IMG/VR virus record: IMGVR_UViG_3300047548_001236
Span: 62,001-126,000 of that record
Length of the DNA: 64,000 bases
Strand: one strand, 5' to 3'
Of the stretch, positions 1,156 through 63,859 are shown piece by piece. Both the position numbers and the translations under genes were made by a program. How positions within the stretch are numbered: position 1 is the first letter of the stretch; each line of letters opens with the position of its first letter. The notes beneath the pieces are model-generated. The model was not told where the DNA came from. It saw only the letters and a list, made by a program, of their open reading frames with translations, and ran no database searches.

Positions 1156-1629
1156 TCACTCCAAGATGTATACATACGGTTTGACGTTCTTCAACTCTGA
1201 TTCGATGATAGCAGCAATCACGTTCCAATCACCGCCTCCAAGACCTGCGCCAATTTGGGGCATTGCAACTGCTGAAATACCGTAGATTTCAAAGAAGCTG
1301 TTGATTTTACTCATCGACTCAGCAACTGCATCATAGCTAACATAGCGCTGTCCATCACGACCATAAAGGTTTTGCGTGATTGCGTTAACAATAACTTTGT
1401 AGTTGTCGGGGTCGTTCACACGATCGCCACAAGGAACCGTAATGACGTCTCCCAGCTTTAAGTGATGGTGCTGTTCGTAAGCAGAACGATAGCGGTCATA
1501 CGCCTTCGGATACTTCTCGCGAATAATCTTCGCAACGCCAGATCCCATAACACCTTGAGCATTGCACCCATGTACAATCACTTTGATTGGGGTCTGGAAC
1601 AGATCGCCTTTGACATATTCAATTTGCAT
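1156..1629 (-). CDS. macrodomain protein (ADP-ribose binding/hydrolase, T4 Tk.4/DarG-like)
   Basis: GDLF..VIVHGCNAQGVMGSGVAK and AMPQIGAGLGGGDW motifs; start set at MQIEY. Confidence 0.88.
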   Translation of the reverse strand: MQIEYVKGDLFQTPIKVIVHGCNAQGVMGSGVAKIIREKYPKAYDRYRSAYEQHHHLKLGDVITVPCGDRVNDPDNYKVIVNAITQNLYGRDGQRYVSYDAVAESMSKINSFFEIYGISAVAMPQIGAGLGGGDWNVIAAIIESELKNVKPYVYILE

Positions 1630-1852
1630 TTTCGAGGTCCTCCGGCATATCAATTTGGATTACTGTGTTGGCGTCCACGCAGAGGCGGTATCTTCCATCA
1701 TCTGTAACAGCTATCCCTCCAGCTTGTTCGCACAATGCTACTTTTCGATTGTGTTCGGGCACAGCAACAAAAAAAGCATAACTCACCATTGTACCAATGA
1801 TGCTGACCATAACTCCTGCAAAGATCGCCCATAGAGTTGTTTCTGTATCCAT
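1619..1852 (-). CDS. small membrane protein
   Basis: N-terminal hydrophobic helix TLWAIFAGVMVSIIGTMVSYAFFVAV. Confidence 0.55.
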   Translation of the reverse strand: MDTETTLWAIFAGVMVSIIGTMVSYAFFVAVPEHNRKVALCEQAGGIAVTDDGRYRLCVDANTVIQIDMPEDLENAN

Positions 1853-2074
1853 TTACTTCGCTCCTTCTAACATCTCCAAATGCTTGCGAACGTAACGCAT
1901 AAACAGAGGAGCGTAATCTTCGGCCTTGAACGTAGCGTTCCCAATATCAGAGATCGGAACAGGAAATGCAAAGTGATCTTGCGTTTCATACCAGAGGTTG
2001 CCGTCGAAGTAGTGAGAGAATCTCACAGTCTTCTTGCTTCCATCGTCGTTATACAGCATTTCCTTGAGTGTCAT
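1853..2074 (-). CDS. hypothetical phage protein
   Basis: GNLWYETQDHFAFPVPISDIGNATFKAED segment; RBS before MTLKEM. Confidence 0.6.
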   Translation of the reverse strand: MTLKEMLYNDDGSKKTVRFSHYFDGNLWYETQDHFAFPVPISDIGNATFKAEDYAPLFMRYVRKHLEMLEGAK

Positions 2075-2864
2075 ATTTCTTCTCCACATAATGATTAATG
2101 GCATCTACAGTCTCATACACGTTGCACGCATAGAGACCTGAGCAGTTGAACGTATTGTACTCGATTACTTTGTATTCTCTACCAATTTTACAGACATCCA
2201 TCACAAAAACATCAGAGGGACTTGCGAAGCTAGCAATATATTCAGCAAAATCGACAGCAAATTTTTCTGTCTGGTTTCTGATATCGAGTCTACGATTCAC
2301 TCGATACTGTGAGAATGCTACCACCTTACCTTCGACAATCACAAACCGCCACTCAACTTCTGGATGCTTGATTGAGCTGACACAAACTTTAGTATCTGGG
2401 TGGTAGTTGGCATATTGTTTTACCCTTTCCATAAAAAATGGAAACTTCTCTGCATCAAAGACGGTTCCGTCGAAGCTCTTGAGGTCGCGGTCAGGTTTGG
2501 CAAAGAAGAACTCCATCCCTTGTGATTGAACGTAAGAGACTACTTCTTCTACATCAAGAACCTTCATATCGTGGTTGAGATAATGGTCGCCGATTGCAGC
2601 GAGCGTATCCGACTCTTTGTAGATGCGAAACACGCCAGGGTTCCAGTTGTTCCGTTCAACCACGTCAAAAATTGCAGTCGATCCGTGAACAACGATAGGT
2701 CCGTCAATGATGGGATCTCCACCAACGACGGACCTCTCAAACGGGACGATATCGATTTCAATATAGTTATGATGTTTGGAGAGGCATGCCGTGCGAATCT
2801 TTTGATTCCACTGCTCGCGGCGATCTTCCGTTTGTCTTTGCACTACCCACGTTACCATAATCAA
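2049..2864 (-). CDS. ATP-grasp domain protein (DUF4343/R2K-like)
   Basis: FFAKPDRDLKSFDG, EWRFVIVEGKVV, FVMDVC...KVIEYNTFNCSGLY motifs. Confidence 0.75.
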   Translation of the reverse strand: MIMVTWVVQRQTEDRREQWNQKIRTACLSKHHNYIEIDIVPFERSVVGGDPIIDGPIVVHGSTAIFDVVERNNWNPGVFRIYKESDTLAAIGDHYLNHDMKVLDVEEVVSYVQSQGMEFFFAKPDRDLKSFDGTVFDAEKFPFFMERVKQYANYHPDTKVCVSSIKHPEVEWRFVIVEGKVVAFSQYRVNRRLDIRNQTEKFAVDFAEYIASFASPSDVFVMDVCKIGREYKVIEYNTFNCSGLYACNVYETVDAINHYVEKKYDTQGNAV

Positions 2865-4958: not shown

Positions 4959-5020
4959 TTGGAAACCCTCTTTAAATGAGAGTATTTATGATCCACGATA
5001 TGTTGACAGGATGATGTGTC

Positions 5021-5074
5021 ACAAGAGGCGGGAGTCGAACCCATCAACACTGCTCCCTACTGAGCTGCCTCGCA
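5021..5074 (-). ncRNA. anticodon-less tRNA-like element
   Basis: D arm GCTC-AGTAGG-GAGC and T arm TGGG-TTCGACT-CCCG joined by about 8 nt; imperfect acceptor TGCGAGG/CCTCTTG; no CCA. Confidence 0.5.
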
Positions 5075-5258
5075 AAATGCTGCGATTGTCGTTTTGCAGA
5101 ACTGATCCTTTTATCAAACTACTCGATGTCCATTCTGGCAAAGGGCCGGCCCCGTCCTTTTAGAGGCGATGTCTTATCCTTCCTCCGTAGCCGTTTGATA
5201 CCCACTCCTTAGATGATGCGTAGTCCCATGACGGCAGGTTTAGCAACATTTCGAGTTG
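5075..5258 (-). ncRNA. putative structured ncRNA of unknown class
   Basis: Non-coding; closing stem CTCGA-ATGT/ACAT-CGAG, internal stems GCCGT/ACGGC and GAGG/CCTC, palindrome GGGCCGGCCC. Confidence 0.35.
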
Positions 5259-5261
5259 TAT

Positions 5262-5337
5262 TGGTGCTTCTGTGAGGAATCGAACCTCATTGTAGACGGT
5301 TATCGGCCGCCGGCCTTTCCATTAGACAGTCAGAAGC
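5262..5337 (-). tRNA. tRNA-Ile(GAT), atypical (C33, extra nt before D arm)
   Basis: Acceptor GCTTCTG/CAGAAGC+ACCA, loop CCGATAA, T loop TTCGATT. Confidence 0.8.
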
Positions 5338-5344
5338 GTGACTT

Positions 5345-5423
5345 TGGCAGCCCCAGTGGGAATTGAACCCACTTCTCCAGCTTGAGAGGCCGGGATCCTA
5401 ATACCAGTGTAGACGATGGGGCC
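5345..5423 (-). tRNA. tRNA-Glu(CTC)
   Basis: GGCCCCA/TGGGGCT+GCCA, loop CTCTCAA. Confidence 0.93.
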
Positions 5424-5429
5424 GTAATT

Positions 5430-5606
5430 TTATGCAAACCTAAACGATGTATATTGTTCTTTGTTTTCTGTTGACAACCACCAGTAGTCACATGAGCACA
5501 GCTCTCTGGTGCTACCTTGGTCATCTCTTACAACCACTTCGTTACAACCGTCAGGCATGAAAGCAATAGGTTGCCATTCCCAAGGTGCGTAGTAGTCTTT
5601 TTCCAA
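5430..5606 (-). CDS. small hypothetical protein inside tRNA array (58 aa, TTG start)
   Basis: GAGG RBS, then (M)EKDYYAPWEWQPIAFMPDGCNEVVVRDDQG...SFRFA*; fills the spacer between tRNA-Tyr and tRNA-Glu. Confidence 0.5.
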   Translation of the reverse strand: MEKDYYAPWEWQPIAFMPDGCNEVVVRDDQGSTRELCSCDYWWLSTENKEQYTSFRFA

Positions 5607-5623
5607 ATAAAAATTCCTCGTTT

Positions 5624-5710
5624 TGGTGGGAGTGGATGGATTTGAACCAACTCACCTTTGCAGGAACAGGGTTACAACCTGCCGCGACTCTCCTACTTCG
5701 CCGCACTCCC
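5624..5710 (-). tRNA. tRNA-Tyr(GTA)
   Basis: GGGAGTG/CACTCCC+ACCA, loop TTGTAAC, long variable arm. Confidence 0.93.
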
Positions 5711-5718
5711 GTATTGTT

Positions 5719-5794
5719 TGGTGGTGCTGGGTGGAATCGAACCACCGACAACCTAGTTATGAGCCAGGCACTCTACCGACTGAGTTACAGCACC
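5719..5794 (-). tRNA. tRNA-Met(CAT) (elongator Met or Ile2)
   Basis: GGTGCTG/CAGCACC+ACCA, loop CTCATAA. Confidence 0.92.
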
Positions 5795-5895
5795 ATTGTT
5801 TAGATGATACGCTGGGTTGCAACTACTTGCGTCAGCTTTGTATCCTTTCGAACGTGCTTCCATCTGACAGAAGCCAGCGTATCATCTAAACAATG
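5794..5895. repeat. 22-bp perfect inverted repeat enclosing a 58-nt structured loop
   Basis: CATTGTTTAGATGATACGCTGG ... CCAGCGTATCATCTAAACAATG. Confidence 0.85.
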
Positions 5896-5898
5896 TTT

Positions 5899-5974
5899 TG
5901 GTGCAGCCCCGCGGGATCGAACCGCGTCCTCTAGCTTTTCAGACTAGCGTACACACCAGTTATACCAGAGCTGC
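5899..5974 (-). tRNA. tRNA-Phe(GAA)
   Basis: GCAGCTC/GGGCTGC+ACCA, loop CTGAAAA. Confidence 0.93.
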
Positions 5975-5979
5975 ATTTT

Positions 5980-6055
5980 TGGTAGATCCGGTGGGACTCG
6001 AACCCACGTACTCCGATTAAAAGTCGGGTGCTAAAACCACCTCAGCTACGGATCT
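5980..6055 (-). tRNA. tRNA-Lys(TTT)
   Basis: AGATCCG/CGGATCT+ACCA, loop CTTTTAA. Confidence 0.92.
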
Positions 6056-6064
6056 ATGTTATTT

Positions 6065-6142
6065 TGGCAGCCCCAACGGGAATCGAACCCGTTTCTCCAG
6101 ATTGAAAGTCTAGTATCCTAACCTACCGTAGACGATGGGGCC
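6065..6142 (-). tRNA. tRNA-Glu(TTC)
   Basis: GGCCCCA/TGGGGCT+GCCA, loop CTTTCAA. Confidence 0.93.
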
Positions 6143-6151
6143 ATTGTGTTT

Positions 6152-6226
6152 TGGTGTGCCGGGAGAATTTCGAAATCTCGACCTTGGGATTAAGAGTCCC
6201 CTACTCTGCCTCTGAGCTACCGGCGC
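6152..6226 (-). tRNA. tRNA-Lys(CTT)
   Basis: GCGCCGG/CCGGCAC+ACCA, loop CTCTTAA. Confidence 0.9.
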
Positions 6227-6241
6227 ATTCTGTTCCTTGGG

Positions 6242-6313
6242 AGACCTATACGGGAGTCAAACCCGTCTAACTAGTTTTGCAGACTAGCACCTAAATCGCT
6301 CGGTCAATAGGTC
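6242..6313 (-). tRNA. tRNA-Cys(GCA), no in-register CCA, extended acceptor stem
   Basis: GACCTAT/ATAGGTC+U73, loop CTGCAAA, T loop TTTGACT. Confidence 0.8.
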
Positions 6314-6334
6314 TCCGAAAGAACAGATATTTTA

Positions 6335-6410
6335 TGGCCCCCAGGGACGGGATCGAACCGCCGACACCATGCTCTTCAGGCACGTGCTCTACCAACTGAG
6401 CTACCTGGGG
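6335..6410 (-). tRNA. tRNA-Phe(GAA)
   Basis: CCCCAGG/CCTGGGG+GCCA, loop CTGAAGA. Confidence 0.92.
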
Positions 6411-6418
6411 ATGTTATA

Positions 6419-6503
6419 TGGTGGGAGGTGCAGGGTTCGAACCTGCCGTAGTTTTCACTGCCGGTTTTACAGACCGGTGCTCGTCCACTCGAGCACACCT
6501 CCC
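6419..6503 (-). tRNA. tRNA-Tyr(GTA)
   Basis: GGGAGGT/ACCTCCC+ACCA, loop CTGTAAA, long variable arm. Confidence 0.92.
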
Positions 6504-6509
6504 AATTTT

Positions 6510-6587
6510 TGGTTGTCCCTCCCAGGATCGAACTGGGGACCTTAGTCTTATCAGGACTACGCTCTAAACCAACTGAGCTAAGGGACA
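6510..6587 (-). tRNA. tRNA-Ile(GAT)
   Basis: TGTCCCT/AGGGACA+ACCA, loop CTGATAA. Confidence 0.93.
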
Positions 6588-6594
6588 GAAATTT

Positions 6595-6676
6595 TGGAGG
6601 CGTCTGTGAGATTCGAACTCACGCCTTTTGGACCTCGGATTTGCAATCCGGTGCGTTACCACTCCGCCTAGACGCC
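6595..6676 (-). tRNA. tRNA-Cys(GCA) with enlarged variable region
   Basis: GGCGTCT/AGACGCC+TCCA, loop TTGCAAA, 12-nt variable region. Confidence 0.88.
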
Positions 6677-6695
6677 ATTTAGATTATCAAAGAGC

Positions 6696-6731
6696 AAAAG
6701 AAAAACCCTCTAAGATTTCTCCTAGAGGGTT
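6696..6731 (-). terminator. Rho-independent terminator (attenuator) immediately upstream of tRNA array
   Basis: 12-bp stem AACCCTCTAGGA-GAAA-TCTTAGAGGGTT followed by TTTCTTTT. Confidence 0.9.
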
Positions 6732-6780
6732 CTGAGATGAACTGCTATATTTGCATATAGAGTCAGCCTCGGGAACCCTC
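6725..6780 (-). promoter_or_regulatory. antiterminator hairpin mutually exclusive with the terminator
   Basis: GAGGGTTC (6780-6773) pairs with GAACCCTC (6732-6725, terminator 5' arm); inner hairpin CTATAT-GCAA-ATATAG. Confidence 0.8.
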
Positions 6781-6822
6781 CCAAGTCATATATTCCTTAA
6801 ATTTGCAAATAAAGTAGGTCAT
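6763..6822 (-). CDS. attenuator leader peptide MTYFICKFKEYMTWEGSRG
   Basis: AGAGGA SD 5 nt before ATG; codons match array anticodons; 3' end overlaps antiterminator strand. Confidence 0.8.
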   Translation of the reverse strand: MTYFICKFKEYMTWEGSRG

Positions 6823-6846
6823 CTCGTTCCTCTGTTTGTTTTAGTC

Positions 6847-6910
6847 TGGATGGGCTTTTTGCGGTTTTGATTTACAAGTCAAATGCATAAAGGTTTGCTG
6901 GAACCATCCA
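6847..6910 (-). promoter_or_regulatory. structured RNA module in tRNA-operon leader
   Basis: TGGATGG/CCATCCA stem enclosing TCCAGCAA opposite GCAAAAAG. Confidence 0.6.
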
Positions 6911-6916
6911 TGTATT

Positions 6917-17781: not shown

Positions 17782-19160
17782 TGAGTGAACTGATTGTAGT
17801 CGATAAAGTTAATGAGGTGCACCTTAAGGTAACTACTGATCCCGGTGTTCGACAGGAGATCATGCAGTACTTCTCATTCCGCCCCAATGGATACCAGTTT
17901 GTTCCATCCTACAAGAATAAAGTGTGGGATGGGTACATTCGTCTATACAATCCTATGAAGCCTGTATTGTATATCGGGTTGTTGGATTATTTGGTCAAGT
18001 TTTGTGAAGATAGAGGATATCAGATAAAGCTCGCAGAGCAGTTTGATCTAGGCGAACAAGTAGACGGTGATTACGTCGTGCAACTAGCAAAGACTCTGAA
18101 CACCCCCTTCGAGCCACGTGACTACCAAATTGAGTATGTTGTAAACGCCCTGAACTCTGGCCGTTCATTGTCCCTCTCTCCAACTTCATCTGGCAAGTCT
18201 TTCATCATATACCTGATTCAACAACACTATATGAGACAGCACCAGCTTCGTACGCTAATCATTGTTCCAACAGTATCACTTGTGTACCAACTTGCGTCTG
18301 ATTTTGTATCGTACGGATGTGATCCTGCATTTATACATAAAATCCTTAGCGGGGCAGAGAAAAATTCAAAGCGTCCAATCGTGATATCAACGTGGCAATC
18401 AATTGTTAAGATGCCTGCTGACTGGTTCAGTCAGTTTGGCGTCGTGCTTGGGGATGAGGCTCACAACTTCCAAGCTAAGTCATTGACGTCAATTATGGAA
18501 AAGATGGTCGATACACCCTATCGTCATGGATTCACAGGCACTATATCATCAGAATCCAAAGTACATAGAATGGTACTTGAAGGTCTGTTTGGTTCAATCA
18601 AGAGATTCGTCACTACTAAGGAGCTGATGGAAGAAGGATCAGTCGCCGACTTCAAGATAAAAGGTATCGTGCTTAACCATTCTCTGGAAGTCACCAAGAC
18701 CTTCAACGATGCGATGAAGGAAGTCAGGAACAAGAATAAAAATCGTGCCAAGAAGATCAACCCCTTCAATCTCGAGAAGGAGTTCTTGATTAACCTCGAA
18801 AAGCGAAACCTATTCATTCGCAATCTTGTGTGGTCACTAAAGGACCAAAACAACCTTATTTTGTTTGATAGAGTCGAAAAGCATGGTAAAGTACTAGAGC
18901 CCTTGCTTCGCAAGGAAGGACGTGTCCTTCACTTTATACATGGTGGTGTAGCTGGTATTGAACGTGATCGTGTTCGCGATGTGATTGAAAACGACAACAC
19001 GTACACCATCACCCTTCACTTCAACGGCAGACAGATTACTGCTGATGGTGAAGAAGAAATTCCACTGACAAATGGATCAATTATAAAAGGCAAGAACGTG
19101 ACGCAAGATCACGATATAGCTGAATTCTGGATACAAGAAAAACTGAGAGCCAAAACATGA
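17781..19160 (+). CDS. uvsW: UvsW helicase, N-terminal part (split gene)
   Basis: PRDYQ, SPTSSGKS, GDEAH, GFTGT; ends before the ASYGTFSTG motif. Confidence 0.9.
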   Translation: MSELIVVDKVNEVHLKVTTDPGVRQEIMQYFSFRPNGYQFVPSYKNKVWDGYIRLYNPMKPVLYIGLLDYLVKFCEDRGYQIKLAEQFDLGEQVDGDYVVQLAKTLNTPFEPRDYQIEYVVNALNSGRSLSLSPTSSGKSFIIYLIQQHYMRQHQLRTLIIVPTVSLVYQLASDFVSYGCDPAFIHKILSGAEKNSKRPIVISTWQSIVKMPADWFSQFGVVLGDEAHNFQAKSLTSIMEKMVDTPYRHGFTGTISSESKVHRMVLEGLFGSIKRFVTTKELMEEGSVADFKIKGIVLNHSLEVTKTFNDAMKEVRNKNKNRAKKINPFNLEKEFLINLEKRNLFIRNLVWSLKDQNNLILFDRVEKHGKVLEPLLRKEGRVLHFIHGGVAGIERDRVRDVIENDNTYTITLHFNGRQITADGEEEIPLTNGSIIKGKNVTQDHDIAEFWIQEKLRAKT

Positions 19161-61300: not shown

Positions 61301-63859
61301 AGTAGCTCTGTTCCGGTTATTTCGCAGCCATATGCAACGACATATAGAACTGCAACAAGCAACTTCTATCTGTACAGCGGCGAAGGATTCCTATCTCCTC
61401 AATACGACGGTTCTTACGACACCACAACAAACCCTCAAACGGTCAATCTGGATTTAACGGGTATTGCTGAAAGTGTAATTGACGTTGTGCAAGAGTTCTA
61501 CCCACTGACGTCGTCGTCCTCAAGAGTTATATCCACAGATACAGACGTTTCGACGGATGCACAGGGTGCAACTATAATTGAAACGTCTCAAGTAATTCGG
61601 GATACTGTGAGAAACATCCAGAGCTCTGTTATTACTAACGAGATTCCTGTAGGCGATTTTGTCACGGATATACGTCTCAATCCATATATCAGATCGCGTG
61701 AAGTGACAATCTTCATGTCGGGTCTAAGACCAAACACGAGACATTACTTCTTCTTTGGTGGGGTCGATGTCAACGAGCACGTTGCCCCTGGTACACTTCC
61801 TAATGGAGTGGATCTTGCAGTTCCAGGAGCAATTAAGCGTTCCGGTAACTACGGAAGTGCCGTTTCAACAAACTCGTCTGGCGAACTGTTTGCTGTGTTT
61901 TTCATACCAGAAGCGACGTTCTTCGTTGGCGACACAAACCTCGACATTGTTGACGTAGATAGTCTCGACAACGTTGCGTCCGCATCGATATCCAGAGGTT
62001 CTCTGACATACAGAGCTTACAACTTCTCGATTCAATCCACAGACCTAACGATATCAACGAGAACGCAAGAATACTCTATAGCAACCACTAGCACTGAAAG
62101 AACAGTAACAGACCGTGTAGTGATTCCTCCACGCAACGACGGTAACGATGGTGGTGGTGGCAATGACCCACTTGCTCAGACGTTCTTCATCAAGAGCAAT
62201 ATGGCACCAAAGTCAAACTGCATCTATGTATCGAAGATAGACCTATACTTTAAACGTAAGAGCACTGTCAACGGTGTTACAGTTATGATCCGTGAGGTCG
62301 TTAACGGATATCCAGCACCACAAGTGCTGCCTTTCTCTAAGGTTCATTTGAAGCCTTCTCAAGTGAATGTTTCGGAAAATGGAAGTGTTCCAACAACAGT
62401 CGTGTTCAAGAGCCCTGTACGTCTTGATGCAGAAAAGGAATACTCATTCGTTATTCAACCAGACGCATTGGATCCAGACTATCTCGTATTCACGTCTAAA
62501 GTTGGCGGAAACGATCTCGTCTCAAACATAGCTGTAACTCAAGACGCGTTCGACGGTGTTCTGTTCACGTCGACGAACGATAGAGCGTGGACATCGTACC
62601 AGGATGAAGATGTTAAGTTTACCCTGTACCGCTATGCGTTCAACACAGGACAAGGGACGATCACTCTACAAACAGATGCTCCTGAATTCCTGACGTTGAA
62701 TGACTGGTCAGGAAATTTCAGAAAAGGTGAACTGATTTACGCACTGAAATCTAACACGATCAGTGTAACTATTACCCGAGGTTCCAATATCGTGTCTGCA
62801 ACTGACATCGGAACTGTGTTCCAAGTGGGTGACTACATCTACGTCCAAAATAATGCAGGTGTGAAAGACCTGCTAAGAGTAGCTTCGGTTGCTGGTAACA
62901 ACGATTCTCTGACCACAGAAGACGTTGCTAAGTTTAGTGGAACGTTTAATGCAAGATCTGCTGTTGCTGGTAAGGTCGTATACTACAACAGATCTCGCCC
63001 TCAAACCATCTACCTCGAAAACTCGTCCGCACGTTCTGGAAGAGTATTTGCTGCGAATGATAATATATTTGGCCTGCGTTCTAACGCAACTGGTACGATT
63101 GGAACAATTGATAATGTTGAGTTGAGTTTCATACGTCCATCGATTGAACGAATCACTGGCAGAGGCAATGACATTAAAATGGCTGTCAAGGCTGTCAATC
63201 CTGACGCTCCAGAGGATACGCCATACACTAGAAATATACCGTTCAACGATAAAACAGTGTTCAACCAGAAGGGCAGCATTGTTTACAGTAAGTCGAATGA
63301 TGTCGGTGAAGCTAAGGGTCTTCAACTGGTGCTAACGCTCAATAACGATGCTGATACCGCTACACCAGTTGTTGACGTTGAAAACGCTCTTGTTCATATC
63401 AATAGATACCGTATCAACAATACGAGTGGTGATAACGCATCAGCTGTTTATATATCAAAGGTTGTTACTCTTGCAGAAGGATTTGATGCCGAGGATTTCA
63501 GACTATATGTGACTGGCTACCGTCCAAATGATACGAACATTAAAACATACATCCGTATTCAGAACTCGTCTGACCCTCAATCCATTGAAGATAACCCCTG
63601 GATTCCAATGTCGATGGTTGAAGGCAATGGTGTATTTTGCTCGACGACCAACATCAACGATTTCCGTGAATATGTGTATGAAATCACGAAGACGAACGGT
63701 TCGAACTACGGAAGAACCGCCGATGGTGTTGTGTACTACACGAACGCAACAGGTAAATATGTCGGATACAAAACCTTCCAAATCAAGATTGAAATGACAT
63801 CGTCTAACATAGGAGTCGTTCCAAGACTTCTTGATTATAGAGGAGTTGCTCTTGAATGA
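58367..63859 (+). CDS. large virion structural protein (DUF4815/VrlC-like)
   Basis: LNVAPYYDDFD, LFKPG..QARELTQLQ, APGADR, RFKNG..VDPF, DPLAQTF. Confidence 0.85.
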   Translation: MPINKDLNVAPYYDDFDISKKYYRVLFKPGYSLQARELTQLQTTLQNQIEQFGDNIFKEGSIVKGCVFTELRNLSYVKVADGITPSLYVDKTGLAEDGSIIEYYYEIENTAGLKAYIVAAADGYQSKAPDLNTFFINYLNTVSSTQQKTFAEGQTLNIKEYRIIKQVTINPLTQEETVTESLQGGEIVKTTTVATFSNPVGLSFGLNVSEGIIFQKGHFLYADDQTIVLTKYMPTVVGQGDFAQPHNISVGFRVNEDIITSQQDTSLLDNANGSENENAPGADRLKLSPILVSIPTPTASNDPSFFTLRRYENGFATQIRDVSQYNVINTEMARRTYEESGDYITRPFKFNTSRKNDVVNVTVGPGTAYIKGYRVSNESTIFLPIDDITSTTTQQDQPISFSYGGYVNVANSHNSTGVVDLEGFQTINLLAGDGTTIIGSAIAKNYTFDTSRITSTNNDDIDSRLYLFGIRMDSDTRAFSDVRYVKLGTGVGTGKLEIDPVVRQPNKSRLVFQIGQDYVKGITDLKLHTRKKAVVSLAGGSDQVTITPLAGETFTSDTLDHILVIGLNNQRLFVNNPTINGLGQLQFVTDQTGGTVTVYYDVRISPTLPRAKQSLDVFVKTTFNSTGPNAKTKYTLGLPDAYKLLSVTAGGVDYTNSFRLVPNQKDDFYDHSYIELLSGRPAPANGTVMTVKFSVFRPDSSGIYNLFTVNSYAGIDPTDIPYFNGKSGNYNLRDCIDLRPHRLPLTGITYSTNEAGASTVSSAVFVGLPTYTTEMFSTSDTYIYPSFETVSSADVEFYLNRTDAVAVDSYGDFFLVKGEESTISRAPVDKDKTTIAEVYIPGFPTYTQEEARKRGKQGYGVRITPIGVQNYTMRDIKRIDDQIERLSYYVTLSALEAETKNLLIRDENGLDRFKNGIVVDPFNDLSIADVNNPKFNASVDFTERSLAPAVQTFPINLKVASASGTQIHKSTLATMAASSSSVPVISQPYATTYRTATSNFYLYSGEGFLSPQYDGSYDTTTNPQTVNLDLTGIAESVIDVVQEFYPLTSSSSRVISTDTDVSTDAQGATIIETSQVIRDTVRNIQSSVITNEIPVGDFVTDIRLNPYIRSREVTIFMSGLRPNTRHYFFFGGVDVNEHVAPGTLPNGVDLAVPGAIKRSGNYGSAVSTNSSGELFAVFFIPEATFFVGDTNLDIVDVDSLDNVASASISRGSLTYRAYNFSIQSTDLTISTRTQEYSIATTSTERTVTDRVVIPPRNDGNDGGGGNDPLAQTFFIKSNMAPKSNCIYVSKIDLYFKRKSTVNGVTVMIREVVNGYPAPQVLPFSKVHLKPSQVNVSENGSVPTTVVFKSPVRLDAEKEYSFVIQPDALDPDYLVFTSKVGGNDLVSNIAVTQDAFDGVLFTSTNDRAWTSYQDEDVKFTLYRYAFNTGQGTITLQTDAPEFLTLNDWSGNFRKGELIYALKSNTISVTITRGSNIVSATDIGTVFQVGDYIYVQNNAGVKDLLRVASVAGNNDSLTTEDVAKFSGTFNARSAVAGKVVYYNRSRPQTIYLENSSARSGRVFAANDNIFGLRSNATGTIGTIDNVELSFIRPSIERITGRGNDIKMAVKAVNPDAPEDTPYTRNIPFNDKTVFNQKGSIVYSKSNDVGEAKGLQLVLTLNNDADTATPVVDVENALVHINRYRINNTSGDNASAVYISKVVTLAEGFDAEDFRLYVTGYRPNDTNIKTYIRIQNSSDPQSIEDNPWIPMSMVEGNGVFCSTTNINDFREYVYEITKTNGSNYGRTADGVVYYTNATGKYVGYKTFQIKIEMTSSNIGVVPRLLDYRGVALE

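Follow-up and report, generated by a model that had tools for sequence, protein, structure and literature searches.

We found that a 283-kb T4-like jumbo phage from freshwater/wastewater carries 13 co-oriented tRNA genes for seven amino acids behind a conserved leader ORF, the core of which, YFICKFKEYM, uses all seven of these amino acids and no others. Several of the tRNAs come as same-anticodon "twins" that are unrelated in sequence, one with a canonical anticodon loop and one with an unusual but conserved loop. Our data fit a back-up supply that switches on when these tRNAs run short, although the switch itself is inferred from sequence. The region was examined within a 64,000-nt window (positions 62,001 to 126,000 of the 282,855-bp IMG/VR record IMGVR_UViG_3300047548_001236, estimated complete), and all coordinates below refer to this window unless stated otherwise. 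The phages with which it was compared are labelled L006, L045, L047, L048, L049, L051, L062 and L063.

Anatomy of the tRNA array and its leader

ARAGORN identified 13 tRNA genes on the - strand within 1,415 bp (5262-6676), at the exact coordinates given in a preliminary description of the sequence, and the loops at positions 32-38 read as stated there, with their register confirmed by Infernal (Table 1). The observation made in that description is therefore correct. All 13 tRNAs reach the Rfam tRNA gathering score of 29 bits, 12 in a common scan and Ile 5262-5337 when scanned alone. Twelve encode a 3' CCA directly after the discriminator, while one Cys tRNA (#47) does so only if its acceptor stem is read as 8 bp. 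That the array holds 13 tRNAs for only seven amino acids is, however, an effect of the window. The whole genome has 51 tRNAs, and the other 38 (genome 12-42 kb) cover the other 13 amino acids plus Met, such that the array supplies the amino acids that the other 38 lack, except Met, which both sets carry. The genome also encodes a T4-type DNA polymerase, baseplate wedge and hub, and an Rnl1-type ligase, with UvsW/UvsY-type neighbours in relatives.

Table 1. Features of the tRNA array and its upstream region. All features on the - strand unless the strand cell is empty; # numbers are tRNA numbers within the genome.
Positions	Strand	Feature	Observations
6917..6945	-	Promoter-like region: TTGACG (6945-6940), 15-nt spacer, TATAAATA (6924-6917), matching the T4 late-promoter consensus	Read from the sequence; function inferred. 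TTGTTGAC motif invariant and TATAAAT(A) present in all five aligned phages. Not listed by a promoter scan because the spacer is 15 nt
6763..6833	-	Leader: Shine-Dalgarno AGAGGA (6833-6828), 5 nt before the ATG, and 19-codon ORF (6822-6763) encoding MTYFICKFKEYMTWEGSRG	Residues 3-12 use all seven array amino acids and no other
6734..6825	-	Leader RNA helices: P1, long-range (6825-6801 with 6758-6734), encloses the ORF; P2, hairpin (6785-6779 with 6773-6767), inside the 3' half of the ORF	Inverted repeat and minimum-energy folds
6719..6785	-	Predicted antiterminator: 6785-6773 (GGGAGGGUUCC, in the ORF) with 6732-6719, the 5' arm of the terminator	Co-transcriptional folding model
6692..6733	-	Intrinsic terminator: 14-bp hairpin with a U-tract (6733-6702), ending 26 nt before the first tRNA	Terminator scan; fold z-score -3.4; conserved, compensatory change in L006
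6595..6676	-	tRNA-Cys(GCA) #51, UU-GCA-AA	82 nt, extra-long variable region, U73. Orthologues of 82-85 nt with U73 in all related arrays (71-79% identity)
6510..6587	-	tRNA-Ile(GAU) #50, canonical CU-GAU-AA	97% identical to L048, only 64-68% to L051 and L006
6419..6503	-	tRNA-Tyr(GUA) #49, canonical CU-GUA-AA	85% identical to L048
6335..6410	-	tRNA-Phe(GAA) #48, variant CU-GAA-GA (G37)	C1-G72, G73. Orthologues in L047 (91%) and L062 (86%), both with G37 and G73
6229..6327	-	tRNA-Cys(GCA) #47 (6238-6314), CU-GCA-AA	Acceptor stem 8 bp, or 7 bp with U73 followed by CCCA; inside a 21-bp extended helix formed by its flanks (z-score -5.2). 92% orthologue, flanks included, in L048, directly after a T5orf172 endonuclease gene
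6152..6226	-	tRNA-Lys(CUU) #46, CU-CUU-AA	93% identical to L051
6065..6142	-	tRNA-Glu(UUC) #45, CU-UUC-AA	80% paralogue of #40
5980..6055	-	tRNA-Lys(UUU) #44, CU-UUU-AA	100% identical to L051, 72% to the closer phage L048. Replaced by 79 other letters in a wastewater variant
5899..5974	-	tRNA-Phe(GAA) #43, canonical CU-GAA-AA	A73, unusual D arm. 95% orthologue in L006 with pair-preserving changes
5795..5898	-	Structured spacer: roughly 20-bp terminal helix closing a variable interior	May be a processing site or a small stable RNA. Fold z-score -6.8; same element at the equivalent place in all related arrays; compensatory changes in 8 of 17 pairs of the terminal helix
5719..5794	-	tRNA(CAU) #42, CU-CAU-AA, probably elongator Met	Leader has an internal AUG and no AUA. 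No close orthologue in relatives. Replaced by 66 other letters in a wastewater variant
5624..5710	-	tRNA-Tyr(GUA) #41, variant UU-GUA-AC (C38)	No close orthologue; L051 also carries one A38 and one C38 Tyr tRNA, and L045 has a C38 Tyr
5430..5606	-	58-residue ORF with a TTG start	Conserved as a protein in L006; four homologues (68-78% identity), all inside tRNA clusters of other phages; no Pfam family
5345..5423	-	tRNA-Glu(CUC) #40, CU-CUC-AA	94% identical to L048; conserved unit with #39
5262..5337	-	tRNA-Ile(GAU) #39, variant CC-GAU-AA (C33)	33.3 bits; atypical D arm. Orthologues in L062 (95%), L048 (85%) and L051 (82%); anticodon stem-loop invariant, T and acceptor stems covary
8445-9149		NUMOD3 ORF	Nearest endonuclease gene to the array

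We next questioned whether the leader could act as the attenuator invoked in the preliminary description. Of 565,652 ten-residue windows in six frames of the genome, two are made only of the seven array amino acids, and only the leader holds all seven. The core FICKF[K/E]EYM is conserved in L048, L049, L051, L006, L062 and L063, and no other tRNA group of the genome has a matched leader. When the leader helices and the terminator were evaluated together across five phages, 91.9% of cells were paired, compared to 30-54% in slid controls, and six pairs had compensatory changes, a number reached by 0 of 500 shuffles. In a co-transcriptional folding model, with a ribosome stalled at codons 3-6 or 9-10, 8-11 of the 14 bases of the terminator 5' arm pair upstream, while with no ribosome, or with a ribosome at Met12 or the stop codon, the arm is free. 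At equilibrium the terminator always wins, so any switch must be kinetic, and the nine core antiterminator pairs are invariant in the five phages, so covariation says nothing for or against this pairing. The leader ORF and its terminator fit a response to shortage of these tRNAs, while a response of read-through to the supply of charged tRNA is inferred from sequence alone (the one run labelled RNA is probably DNA).

Origin and conservation of the twin tRNAs

The preliminary description also stated that the members of each same-anticodon pair have different bodies and different loop flanks. Indeed, the bodies of the pairs are 54-64% identical, no closer than unrelated tRNAs of this genome, and only the two Glu tRNAs are paralogues. 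The difference in loop flank is by itself not more than chance, since random tRNA pairs of this genome share the four flank bases only 21% of the time, which gives P = 0.40 that four pairs all differ (0.08 using within-array frequencies). What does exceed chance is which positions differ and that the variants recur in other phages. Three of the eight twin members depart from the usual bacterial loop (C33 in Ile, G37 in Phe, and U32 with C38 in Tyr), while the other five have CU..AA or UU..AA. One member of every pair has the commonest phage and bacterial loop, CU..AA, and the Cys pair differs only by C/U at position 32, which is ordinary variation. The pairs differ across the whole body, including the discriminator base, rather than specifically in the loop, although the Ile and Tyr twins share the discriminator A73.

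The array is a mosaic. Each tRNA has its closest orthologue in a different relative, regardless of how close that phage is, single tRNAs are replaced in near-identical wastewater variants, and endonuclease genes lie inside the arrays of L048, L051, L062 and L047. Close relatives carry different subsets of twins (0-3), so a pair is not obligatory. L006 has none, so twins are dispensable, and in L051, L062 and L063 a variant is the only phage copy of that tRNA. These data raise the possibility that the twins are neutral passengers of mosaic evolution, in which homing-endonuclease-driven gene conversion between co-infecting relatives keeps adding and removing tRNA cassettes and the loop differences reflect the allele pool circulating among these phages. 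The location of Cys #47 next to an endonuclease gene in L048 and the chance-level difference in loop flank are in line with this explanation.

We consider this explanation unlikely, although it is the strongest of the alternatives, because the odd loops are conserved and recurrent with compensatory changes in the stems, which indicates that they are under selection. Ile with C33 occurs in four related and three distant phages. The Ile U33 + C33 twin is retained in four phages whose neighbouring protein has diverged to 75-93% identity, with C33 invariant, and across seven C33-Ile tRNAs 16 of 18 pairs show compensatory changes. The variants cluster at modification determinants rather than at any loop position. 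C33 occurs in 4 of 11 Ile-GAU tRNAs against 5 of 238 others. Phe with G37 and Tyr with C38 also recur. In the G37-Phe family 15 of 21 pairs show compensatory changes, and the Phe G37/G73 lineage co-occurs with an A37/A73 Phe in L047. Overall, 15 of 21 same-anticodon pairs are one canonical plus one variant, against 7.5 expected (P = 0.0002), although this statistic counts related phages as independent and uses a relaxed ARAGORN threshold. The single-copy tRNAs of this genome are 13 canonical and 2 variant. The Leu(GAG) and Pro(UGG) twins of this genome, and the Leu(UAG) and Pro(UGG) twins of other phages, likewise contrast G37 with A37, while the Cys twins here and the Thr and Asn twins elsewhere in the genome have the same class of loop.

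Codon usage, nucleases and tRNA modification

We asked whether codon demand explains the twins and found that it does not, judged on phage codon usage. Cys is the rarest amino acid at 0.9% of codons yet has two tRNAs, and the most used Arg codons, CGU and AGA, have no phage tRNA while the rare AGG and CGA have one. Duplicated anticodons serve only marginally busier codon families (Mann-Whitney P = 0.06). Ile, Phe and Tyr are moderately frequent, and an attenuator would also serve plain demand matching. Nevertheless, two G34 tRNAs add no decoding capacity, and dosage is gained most simply by identical copies rather than by unrelated sequences. Gene dosage or codon-usage compensation, in which extra copies would raise the supply for heavily used codons or for codons the host decodes poorly, is the least likely of the explanations considered here.

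The preliminary description interpreted the pairs as bet-hedging against different anticodon nucleases rather than compensation for codon bias, and this interpretation is partly supported. In its favour are the failure of codon usage to account for the twins, the leader and terminator, the selection on the odd loops, and the presence of tRNA-repair genes, namely an Rnl1-type RNA ligase, Rnl2-like ligases and a CCA-adding enzyme. Phage tRNAs rescue infection from PARIS, retron-Eco7 and PrrC. However, our searches identified no nuclease and no host, the only bacterial lead being a 5.9-kb contig binned in an Erysipelotrichaceae MAG that lacks Phe, Tyr and Ile tRNAs, and escape from nucleases therefore remains a plausible hypothesis.

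A more specific reading fits better than different nucleases. The variant positions (C33, G37, C38) are the ones expected to stop host enzymes from installing the bulky position-37 modification (t6A, i6A). C33 stops E. coli TsaBCDE from making t6A37 (PMC8887486), although this effect was measured on E. coli initiator tRNA only, and A36-A37-A38 is necessary for isopentenylation in E. coli (PMC5699536). The t6A37 and wobble modifications raise PrrC cleavage (PMC13191261). On the other hand, t6A37 also helps E. coli IleRS, and a t6A-less Ile tRNA could therefore be poorly charged.

We considered two further explanations and regard both as improbable, the second slightly more so. First, twins might give independence from host tRNA modification with no nuclease involved. 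Late in infection the phage would flood the cell with tRNA that host MiaA/MiaB, TsaBCDE and TrmD cannot fully modify, or host synthesis would be shut off, and variants that do not need the position-37 modification would keep decoding going. The match to modification determinants, the late-type TATAAATA motif upstream of the leader, and the TilS catalytic domain and CCA-adding enzyme of the phage, which already substitutes for host tRNA maturation, favour this view. However, it gives no clear reason why an unmodified A37 with C38 or C33 would decode better than an unmodified canonical loop, and the phage keeps an Rnl1-type ligase, whose known role in T4 is repair of nuclease-cut tRNA. Second, each twin might be the better substrate for the aminoacyl-tRNA synthetases and processing enzymes of a different host species, which would widen the host range. 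The bodies differ throughout. The Phe twins differ in the first pair and discriminator (G1-C72/A73 against C1-G72/G73), the Cys twins differ in acceptor length, 3' end and variable region, and the Glu(CUC) of L051 keeps the body but has a wholly different acceptor stem and discriminator. No phage Tyr, Phe, Cys or Ile synthetase was found, so for these four the phage depends on host enzymes. However, host hedging does not explain why the loop variants fall on modification determinants or recur in distant phages, and the Ile and Tyr twins share the discriminator A73.

Proposed model and related systems

We propose, tentatively, that the region is one transcription unit comprising promoter, leader peptide, intrinsic terminator and 13 tRNAs, with the leader peptide built from codons read by these tRNAs. 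When all seven kinds of charged tRNA are plentiful, the ribosome would run to the leader stop codon, the terminator would form and the array would stay low. When any of them runs short, the ribosome would stall in the YFICKFKEYM stretch, an upstream segment would capture the 5' arm of the terminator, and transcription would read into the array, making it a self-regulating back-up supply. In this view, the twins were gained by exchange of single tRNA cassettes between related co-infecting phages, probably helped by homing endonucleases, rather than by tandem duplication. They would be kept mostly as one canonical tRNA, an efficient decoder, plus one whose loop lacks a determinant for the host's position-37 modification, with C33 blocking t6A and G37 or C38 breaking the A36-A37-A38 motif. 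The variant would stay usable when loop-reading or modification-reading host nucleases attack, or when host modification cannot keep up. Our analysis establishes the anatomy, conservation and mosaicism of the array and the recurrence of the variants, while the attenuation switch, the modification status of each tRNA, any nuclease resistance and the benefit of keeping twins are inferred.

The array resembles, in part, several known systems. Nuclease-insensitive phage tRNAs include mycobacteriophage cluster C1 and coliphage tRNAs with anticodon-loop changes (van den Berg et al. 2023, PMC10264068), the T5 tRNA-Lys variant not cut by PARIS AriB (PMC11464382), and T5 tRNA-Tyr against retron-Eco7 and tRNA-Lys against PrrC (PMC11555353). 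They share with the array isoacceptors that defence nucleases are known to hit (Lys, Tyr), deviant loop bases, tRNA-rich regions in large lytic phages, and a poor fit to codon usage. In those cases one phage tRNA differs from the host tRNA and a named nuclease is known, while here the contrast is between two phage tRNAs with the same anticodon and the variants hit modification determinants (positions 33, 37, 38). The T4 tRNA region with the SegB homing endonuclease, and SegB-driven amplification of tRNA-Tyr in T6 against Septu (PMC2330249, PMC13096335), likewise combine in a T4-like phage a tRNA cluster with small ORFs and stable structured RNAs, GIY-YIG, T5orf172 or NUMOD3-type endonuclease genes inside or beside the arrays of relatives, and tRNA copy number changes between close relatives. 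SegB amplification gives identical tandem repeats, whereas the twins here are neither near-identical nor tandem, and no endonuclease ORF lies inside 5262-6676. Attenuators of amino-acid operons and of pheST (trp, his and pheL/pheM-type leader peptides; PMC3082878 for pheL) also have a short leader ORF with a Shine-Dalgarno sequence, rich in the codons whose supply is sensed, an intrinsic terminator just downstream, and an alternative pairing upon ribosome stalling, which is predicted here. They regulate biosynthetic enzymes or a synthetase rather than tRNAs, and the leader described here samples seven amino acids once or twice each rather than repeating one. We found no leader-peptide attenuator in front of a tRNA operon in the literature, which is not proof of absence. 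Finally, a T4-like vibriophage tRNA set, including a tRNA(CAU) carrying lysidine, sustains late translation as host RNA decays (cited in PMC13191261). It is similarly a large complement that replaces a failing host pool, and the present phage also has a TilS-type enzyme context, but that work describes no twins, variant loops or leader-peptide control.

A bolder reading, which we consider doubtful but not excluded, is that the array and leader form a closed sensing loop that has not been described before. The phage would measure, by translating a ten-codon probe, the usable supply of exactly the seven tRNA kinds it can make itself, and transcribe them on demand. For vulnerable isoacceptors it would keep two deliberately different molecules, one built to receive the host's position-37 modification and one built to refuse it through C33, G37 or C38, such that no single host attack on anticodon loops or on tRNA modification could stop phage translation, and the same rule would hold across jumbo phages.

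Why phages carry tRNAs has been argued for fifty years, with codon compensation set against escape from tRNA-directed defence, and this locus makes the question testable in a new way. The leader peptide appears to spell out the seven tRNA kinds, which points to shortage of these tRNAs as the trigger, and same-anticodon twins that differ at C33, G37 or C38 should differ in modification, with one twin modified at position 37 and the other not. If confirmed, this would add a rule for reading phage tRNA sets, give a regulatory part that reports tRNA supply, and help explain how large phages resist tRNA-cleaving defences such as PrrC, PARIS, Septu and retron effectors.

The tRNA array and its genomic context

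We found that the 13 tRNA genes of the array are recovered by ARAGORN on the minus strand at exactly 5262-6676. The tRNA model of Rfam confirmed twelve of them in a 5-kb scan. Since the thirteenth, the Ile tRNA numbered #39, was missed in that scan, we asked whether it was a decaying pseudogene. This reading was rejected because the gene scores 33.3 bits when its stretch is scanned alone and because its orthologues show compensatory changes. Twelve genes encode a 3' CCA directly after the discriminator, while Cys #47 ends in CCCA. The seven-base anticodon loops are CU-GAU-AA and CC-GAU-AA for Ile(GAU), CU-GUA-AA and UU-GUA-AC for Tyr(GUA), CU-GAA-AA and CU-GAA-GA for Phe(GAA), and CU-GCA-AA and UU-GCA-AA for Cys(GCA). 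Both Lys and both Glu isoacceptors are present, plus one CAU tRNA. The preliminary description had listed this set and these loops, and its observation is confirmed. Same-anticodon partners (i.e., twins) are 54-64% identical, like unrelated tRNAs, which rules out tandem duplication as their origin. Only Glu CUC/UUC, at 80%, look like a duplication followed by an anticodon change.

The window covers bases 62,001-126,000 of a 282,855-bp virus record with T4-like gene content, including a DNA polymerase at most 44% identical to cyanomyovirus polymerases, an SbcC-like nuclease, and baseplate hub and wedge proteins. The genome contains 51 tRNAs, all on one strand. The other 38 lie scattered at 12-42 kb and cover the thirteen amino acids missing from this array, plus Met, an amber-suppressor anticodon (CUA), and one tRNA with an eight-base loop (CU-UGCA-AG). 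The count of 13 tRNAs for 7 amino acids given in the preliminary description therefore reflects a division of labour between two regions. Same-anticodon twins also occur in the other region, for Leu GAG, Thr UGU, Pro UGG, Ala UGC, and Asn GUU. TAG ends only 20 of 262 long ORFs, against 147 for TGA and 95 for TAA; no other genetic code was assumed.

We next asked which host this phage might infect. No near match was found among cultured phages, and a genome scan gave only a 5.9-kb contig in an Erysipelotrichaceae MAG, which lacks Phe, Tyr, and Ile tRNAs and whose tRNA-His (G-1/C73) differs from that of the phage. The phage tRNA-His has no encoded G-1 (the preceding base is A), and its discriminator is A73 instead of the usual bacterial G-1:C73. 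Near-identical DNA occurs in freshwater and wastewater metagenomes, but these matches were rejected as evidence of expression since all runs are contigs and the one labelled RNA is probably DNA.

Features of the array, its surroundings, and related loci (window coordinates unless a genome position, G000:C1, or a related phage contig is named)
Feature	Location	Strand	Description
Macro-domain protein	1156-1653	-	Resembles the DarG antitoxin ADP-ribosyl glycohydrolase (75 bits, below the cut-off)
ATP-grasp protein	2049-2864	-	R2K clade
tRNA-like fragment	5017-5090	-	Acceptor 5' strand, D arm, and T arm, but no anticodon arm
Ile(GAU) #39	5262-5337	-	Loop CC-GAU-AA (C33)
Glu(CUC) #40	5345-5423	-	Discriminator G73
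Glu(CUC) of L051	L051 16346-16424		Body of #40 almost unchanged; acceptor stem entirely different but fully paired; discriminator A73
ORF inside the array	5430-5606	-	58 residues, TTG start, three Cys
Structured spacer	5795-5898	-	About 100 nt
Structured spacer in relatives	L006 12342-12448 and 12716-12824; L048 14827-14916; L051 14736-14837; L062 16028-16129; L063 18981-19093		Equivalents of the spacer
Cys #47 with flanks	6229-6327	-	21-bp helix made by its own flanks; 8-bp acceptor stem, or U73 followed by CCCA
tRNAs of 82-88 nt	6595-6676 (-); L006 12534-12715; G000:C1:35540-35623		Cys(GCA), Lys(CUU), Lys(UUU), and Thr(UGU)
Terminator	6733-6702	-	14-bp hairpin with a U-tract, ending 26 nt before the first tRNA
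Predicted antiterminator segment	6784-6773	-	Predicted to pair with the 5' arm of the terminator
Leader ORF	6822-6763	-	19 codons
AGAGGA	6833-6828	-	
Second short ORF	6879-6911	-	MDGSSKPLCI, in the leader upstream of the sensor peptide
TTGACG, 15-nt spacer, TATAAATA	6945-6917	-	
NUMOD3 ORF	8445-9149	+	Homing-endonuclease-like; just downstream of the Ro-like gene and slightly overlapping its 3' end
Ro60-like protein	9132-10592	-	RNA-binding (DUF2828 + DUF7788/vWA)
TilS catalytic domain	11983-12603	-	206 residues; only the catalytic N-domain of lysidine synthetase TilS (TIGR02432, 115 bits)
CCA-adding and repair enzyme	13771-15024	-	Full enzyme
tRNA-His	G000:C1:15934-16008		Outside the window
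Amber-suppressor tRNA and tRNA with an eight-base loop	G000:C1:21238-21313 and 18681-18757		Outside the window
Lys(CUU) of L062	L062 16215-16289		C33
Ile(GAU) of L063	L063 18599-18672		G37; the only Ile(GAU) in L063

Mosaic composition of the array and its relatives

Homologues of the neighbouring Ro60-like protein led to related phage contigs, all of which carry an array at the same place for the same seven amino acids but with different copy numbers. Identified by their locus numbers, these are L048 (93% identity in the Ro-like protein; twins for Cys and Ile), L051 (83%; Ile and Tyr), L062 (75%; Ile), L006 (77%; none), and L063 (75%; none). Each tRNA of the present array has its closest relative in a different phage. 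Ile #50 (97%), Tyr #49 (85%), Cys #47 (92%), and Glu #40 (94%) are closest to L048; Lys #44 is 100% identical in L051 but only 72% in the closer L048; Lys #46 is 93% identical in L051, Phe #43 95% in L006, and Phe #48 91% in the distant phage locus L047; Tyr #41 and CAU #42 have no close relative. Furthermore, contigs of near-identical wastewater variants replace single tRNAs by other sequence, with #42 replaced by 66 letters, #44 by 79 letters, and the core of #39 by 597 letters. The Glu(CUC) tRNA of L051 looks as if the acceptor stem alone had been swapped.

Relatives carry endonuclease genes inside their arrays, namely T5orf172/MUG113, a faint SegE GIY-YIG match, and NUMOD3-type genes. The flanked Cys #47 unit is 92% conserved in L048, where it directly follows a T5orf172 endonuclease gene, and it may be a tRNA travelling with a mobile endonuclease cassette. 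T4 SegB, a homing endonuclease inside the T4 tRNA region, drives preferential inheritance of that region, and in T6 it drives amplification of tRNA-Tyr against Septu. We infer that the twins arose by cassette exchange between co-infecting relatives and not by local duplication. Neutral mosaicism is one rival explanation for the twins.

Other parts of the array were also compared across phages. A spacer equivalent to 5795-5898 occurs in every related array; its terminal helix of about 20 bp is conserved (consensus ends UUAUUCUGAUGAUACACU ... AGUGUAUCUUCUGAAUAA) and its interior is variable. The fold z-score is -6.8, and 8 of 17 helix pairs have compensatory changes. This element may be an RNase III-type processing site or a small stable RNA like those of the T4 tRNA region. 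We considered a C/D-box RNA, but UGAUGA and CUGA motifs are present in relatives and absent in this phage, and the element folds as a plain long helix, so this reading was dropped. The 58-residue ORF is conserved as a protein, and all its homologues (68-78% identity) lie inside tRNA clusters of otherwise different phages (loci L042-L047); it has no Pfam family. Some tRNAs for amino acids that normally have short variable regions are 82-88 nt long, which is the case for Cys(GCA) in all related arrays, Lys(CUU) and Lys(UUU) in L006, L063, and L047, and Thr(UGU) in this genome and in loci L014 and L018-L020. Finally, the tRNA-like fragment was considered as a Y-RNA partner of the Ro-like protein. 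This was rejected because the fragment has no Rfam match, has a fold z-score of +1.2, and is not conserved in L048, L051, or L062; it is probably the remnant of a decayed tRNA.

Variant anticodon loops and position-37 modification

We next questioned whether the loop differences between twins exceed chance. As put forward in the preliminary description, where every same-anticodon pair was said to differ in its loop flank, they do not. Random tRNA pairs of this genome share all four flanking loop bases only 21% of the time, such that four differing pairs are expected with P = 0.40, or 0.08 using frequencies within the array. In each pair one member has the commonest loop, CU..AA.

The variant loops themselves, however, are selected. 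Ile #39 has orthologues in L062 (95%), L048 (85%), and L051 (82%), which ARAGORN misses at its default settings. The anticodon stem-loop is invariant while the T and acceptor stems change in a compensatory way. When three C33 Ile tRNAs from distant phages are included, 16 of 18 helix pairs show compensatory changes and the loop CCGAUAA never varies. Among 249 non-redundant phage tRNAs gathered here, C33 occurs in 4 of 11 Ile-GAU tRNAs and in 5 of 238 others. Phe with G37 is likewise a covarying lineage (15 of 21 pairs compensatory) that keeps C1-G72 and G73, and it co-occurs with an A37/A73 Phe in L047 as it does here. L051 holds one A38 and one C38 Tyr, as this phage does, and L048 holds one A38 and one C38 Cys.

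The variant positions are determinants of the host's position-37 modification. C33 prevents E. coli TsaBCDE from making t6A37 (PMC8887486), and the A36-A37-A38 motif, which G37 or C38 breaks, is necessary for isopentenylation in E. coli (PMC5699536). For the Leu and Pro twins elsewhere, one member has G37, the m1G37 position, and the other has A37. Further loops predicted to refuse t6A occur in relatives, in Lys(CUU) of L062 and Ile(GAU) of L063. We classed every tRNA as canonical or variant on this basis and found that 15 of 21 same-anticodon pairs (this genome plus 18 loci) are mixed, against 7.5 expected (P = 0.0002), although the four Ile pairs share ancestry, a relaxed detection threshold was used, and the Cys, Thr, and Asn twins of this genome are not mixed. 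Single-copy tRNAs of this genome are 13 canonical and 2 variant. PrrC cleaves modified tRNA-Lys better than unmodified, with t6A37 contributing (PMC13191261). A tRNA that refuses the modification could therefore be a poorer nuclease substrate, a link that is inferred here. Independence from host modification without any nuclease is a rival explanation.

A predicted leader-peptide attenuator and the tRNA supply

The 290 nt upstream of the array are conserved in five phages at 79% column identity, higher than the flanking genes, and contain in order a TTGACG element with a 15-nt spacer and TATAAATA, AGAGGA, a 19-codon ORF, and a terminator. Residues 3-12 of the peptide, YFICKFKEYM, use all seven amino acids of the array and no other. 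Among 565,652 ten-residue windows in six frames of the genome, only two are made of these seven amino acids and only this one has all seven. The core is conserved in six relatives, and in two of them the ORF stops right after it. We searched for matched leader peptides before the other tRNA groups of the genome and found none. The second short ORF of the leader has a start, ATGGATG..TTCAGCAA, that is invariant in five phages.

The leader helices and the terminator are supported by covariation, with 6 compensatory pairs, a number reached by 0 of 500 shuffles. Folding gave a mixed result. At equilibrium, with a masked ribosome footprint, the terminator persists in every state, and only a co-transcriptional model shows a switch. 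In that model, before the 3' arm of the terminator is transcribed, a ribosome stalled at codons 3-6 or 9-10 leaves 6784-6773 free to pair with 8-11 bases of the 5' arm, while a ribosome at the stop codon, or no ribosome at all, leaves that arm free; the antiterminator bases are invariant, so covariation cannot test this pairing. This is the design of a classical leader-peptide attenuator placed in front of tRNA genes, for which searches of the literature found no precedent. The internal AUG codon and the absence of AUA suggest that the CAU tRNA of the array is an elongator Met. For the same reason, we do not favour this copy as a tRNA-Ile2 served by the phage TilS domain, although this may hold for one of the three other CAU tRNAs.

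We then asked whether codon usage could explain the twins. Cys is the rarest amino acid at 0.9% of codons, yet has twins; the most used Arg codons have no phage tRNA; and duplicated anticodons serve only marginally busier codons (P = 0.06). Codon compensation is thus a poor fit, although gene dosage is retained among the rival explanations. We found no TyrRS/TrpRS, PheRS, CysRS, or class Ia (Ile-type) synthetase domain in the genome, so private pairs of a phage synthetase with one twin are excluded. RtcB is absent. The phage does have an Rnl1-type RNA ligase, two Rnl2-like proteins, and a kinase domain. Within 9 kb of the array it also has the TilS catalytic domain, the CCA-adding and repair enzyme, and the Ro60-like protein, a trio that is conserved in that order in L048, L051, L062, and L063.

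The preliminary description had proposed bet-hedging against different nucleases rather than codon-bias compensation, consistent with an attenuator, and our data support this interpretation only in part. The array with its loops, the mosaic relationships, the recurrence of the variant loops, and the conservation of the leader and terminator come directly from the analysis, whereas cassette exchange, the attenuation switch, the modification state of the twins, and nuclease evasion itself are inferred, the last without an identified host. The predicted attenuator and the selected variant loops fit a defence of the tRNA supply. Besides the rivals named here, hedging across hosts might also account for the twins. 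Our best explanation, which we hold tentatively, is that this is a self-regulated back-up array whose twins pair a modifiable tRNA with a modification-refusing one.
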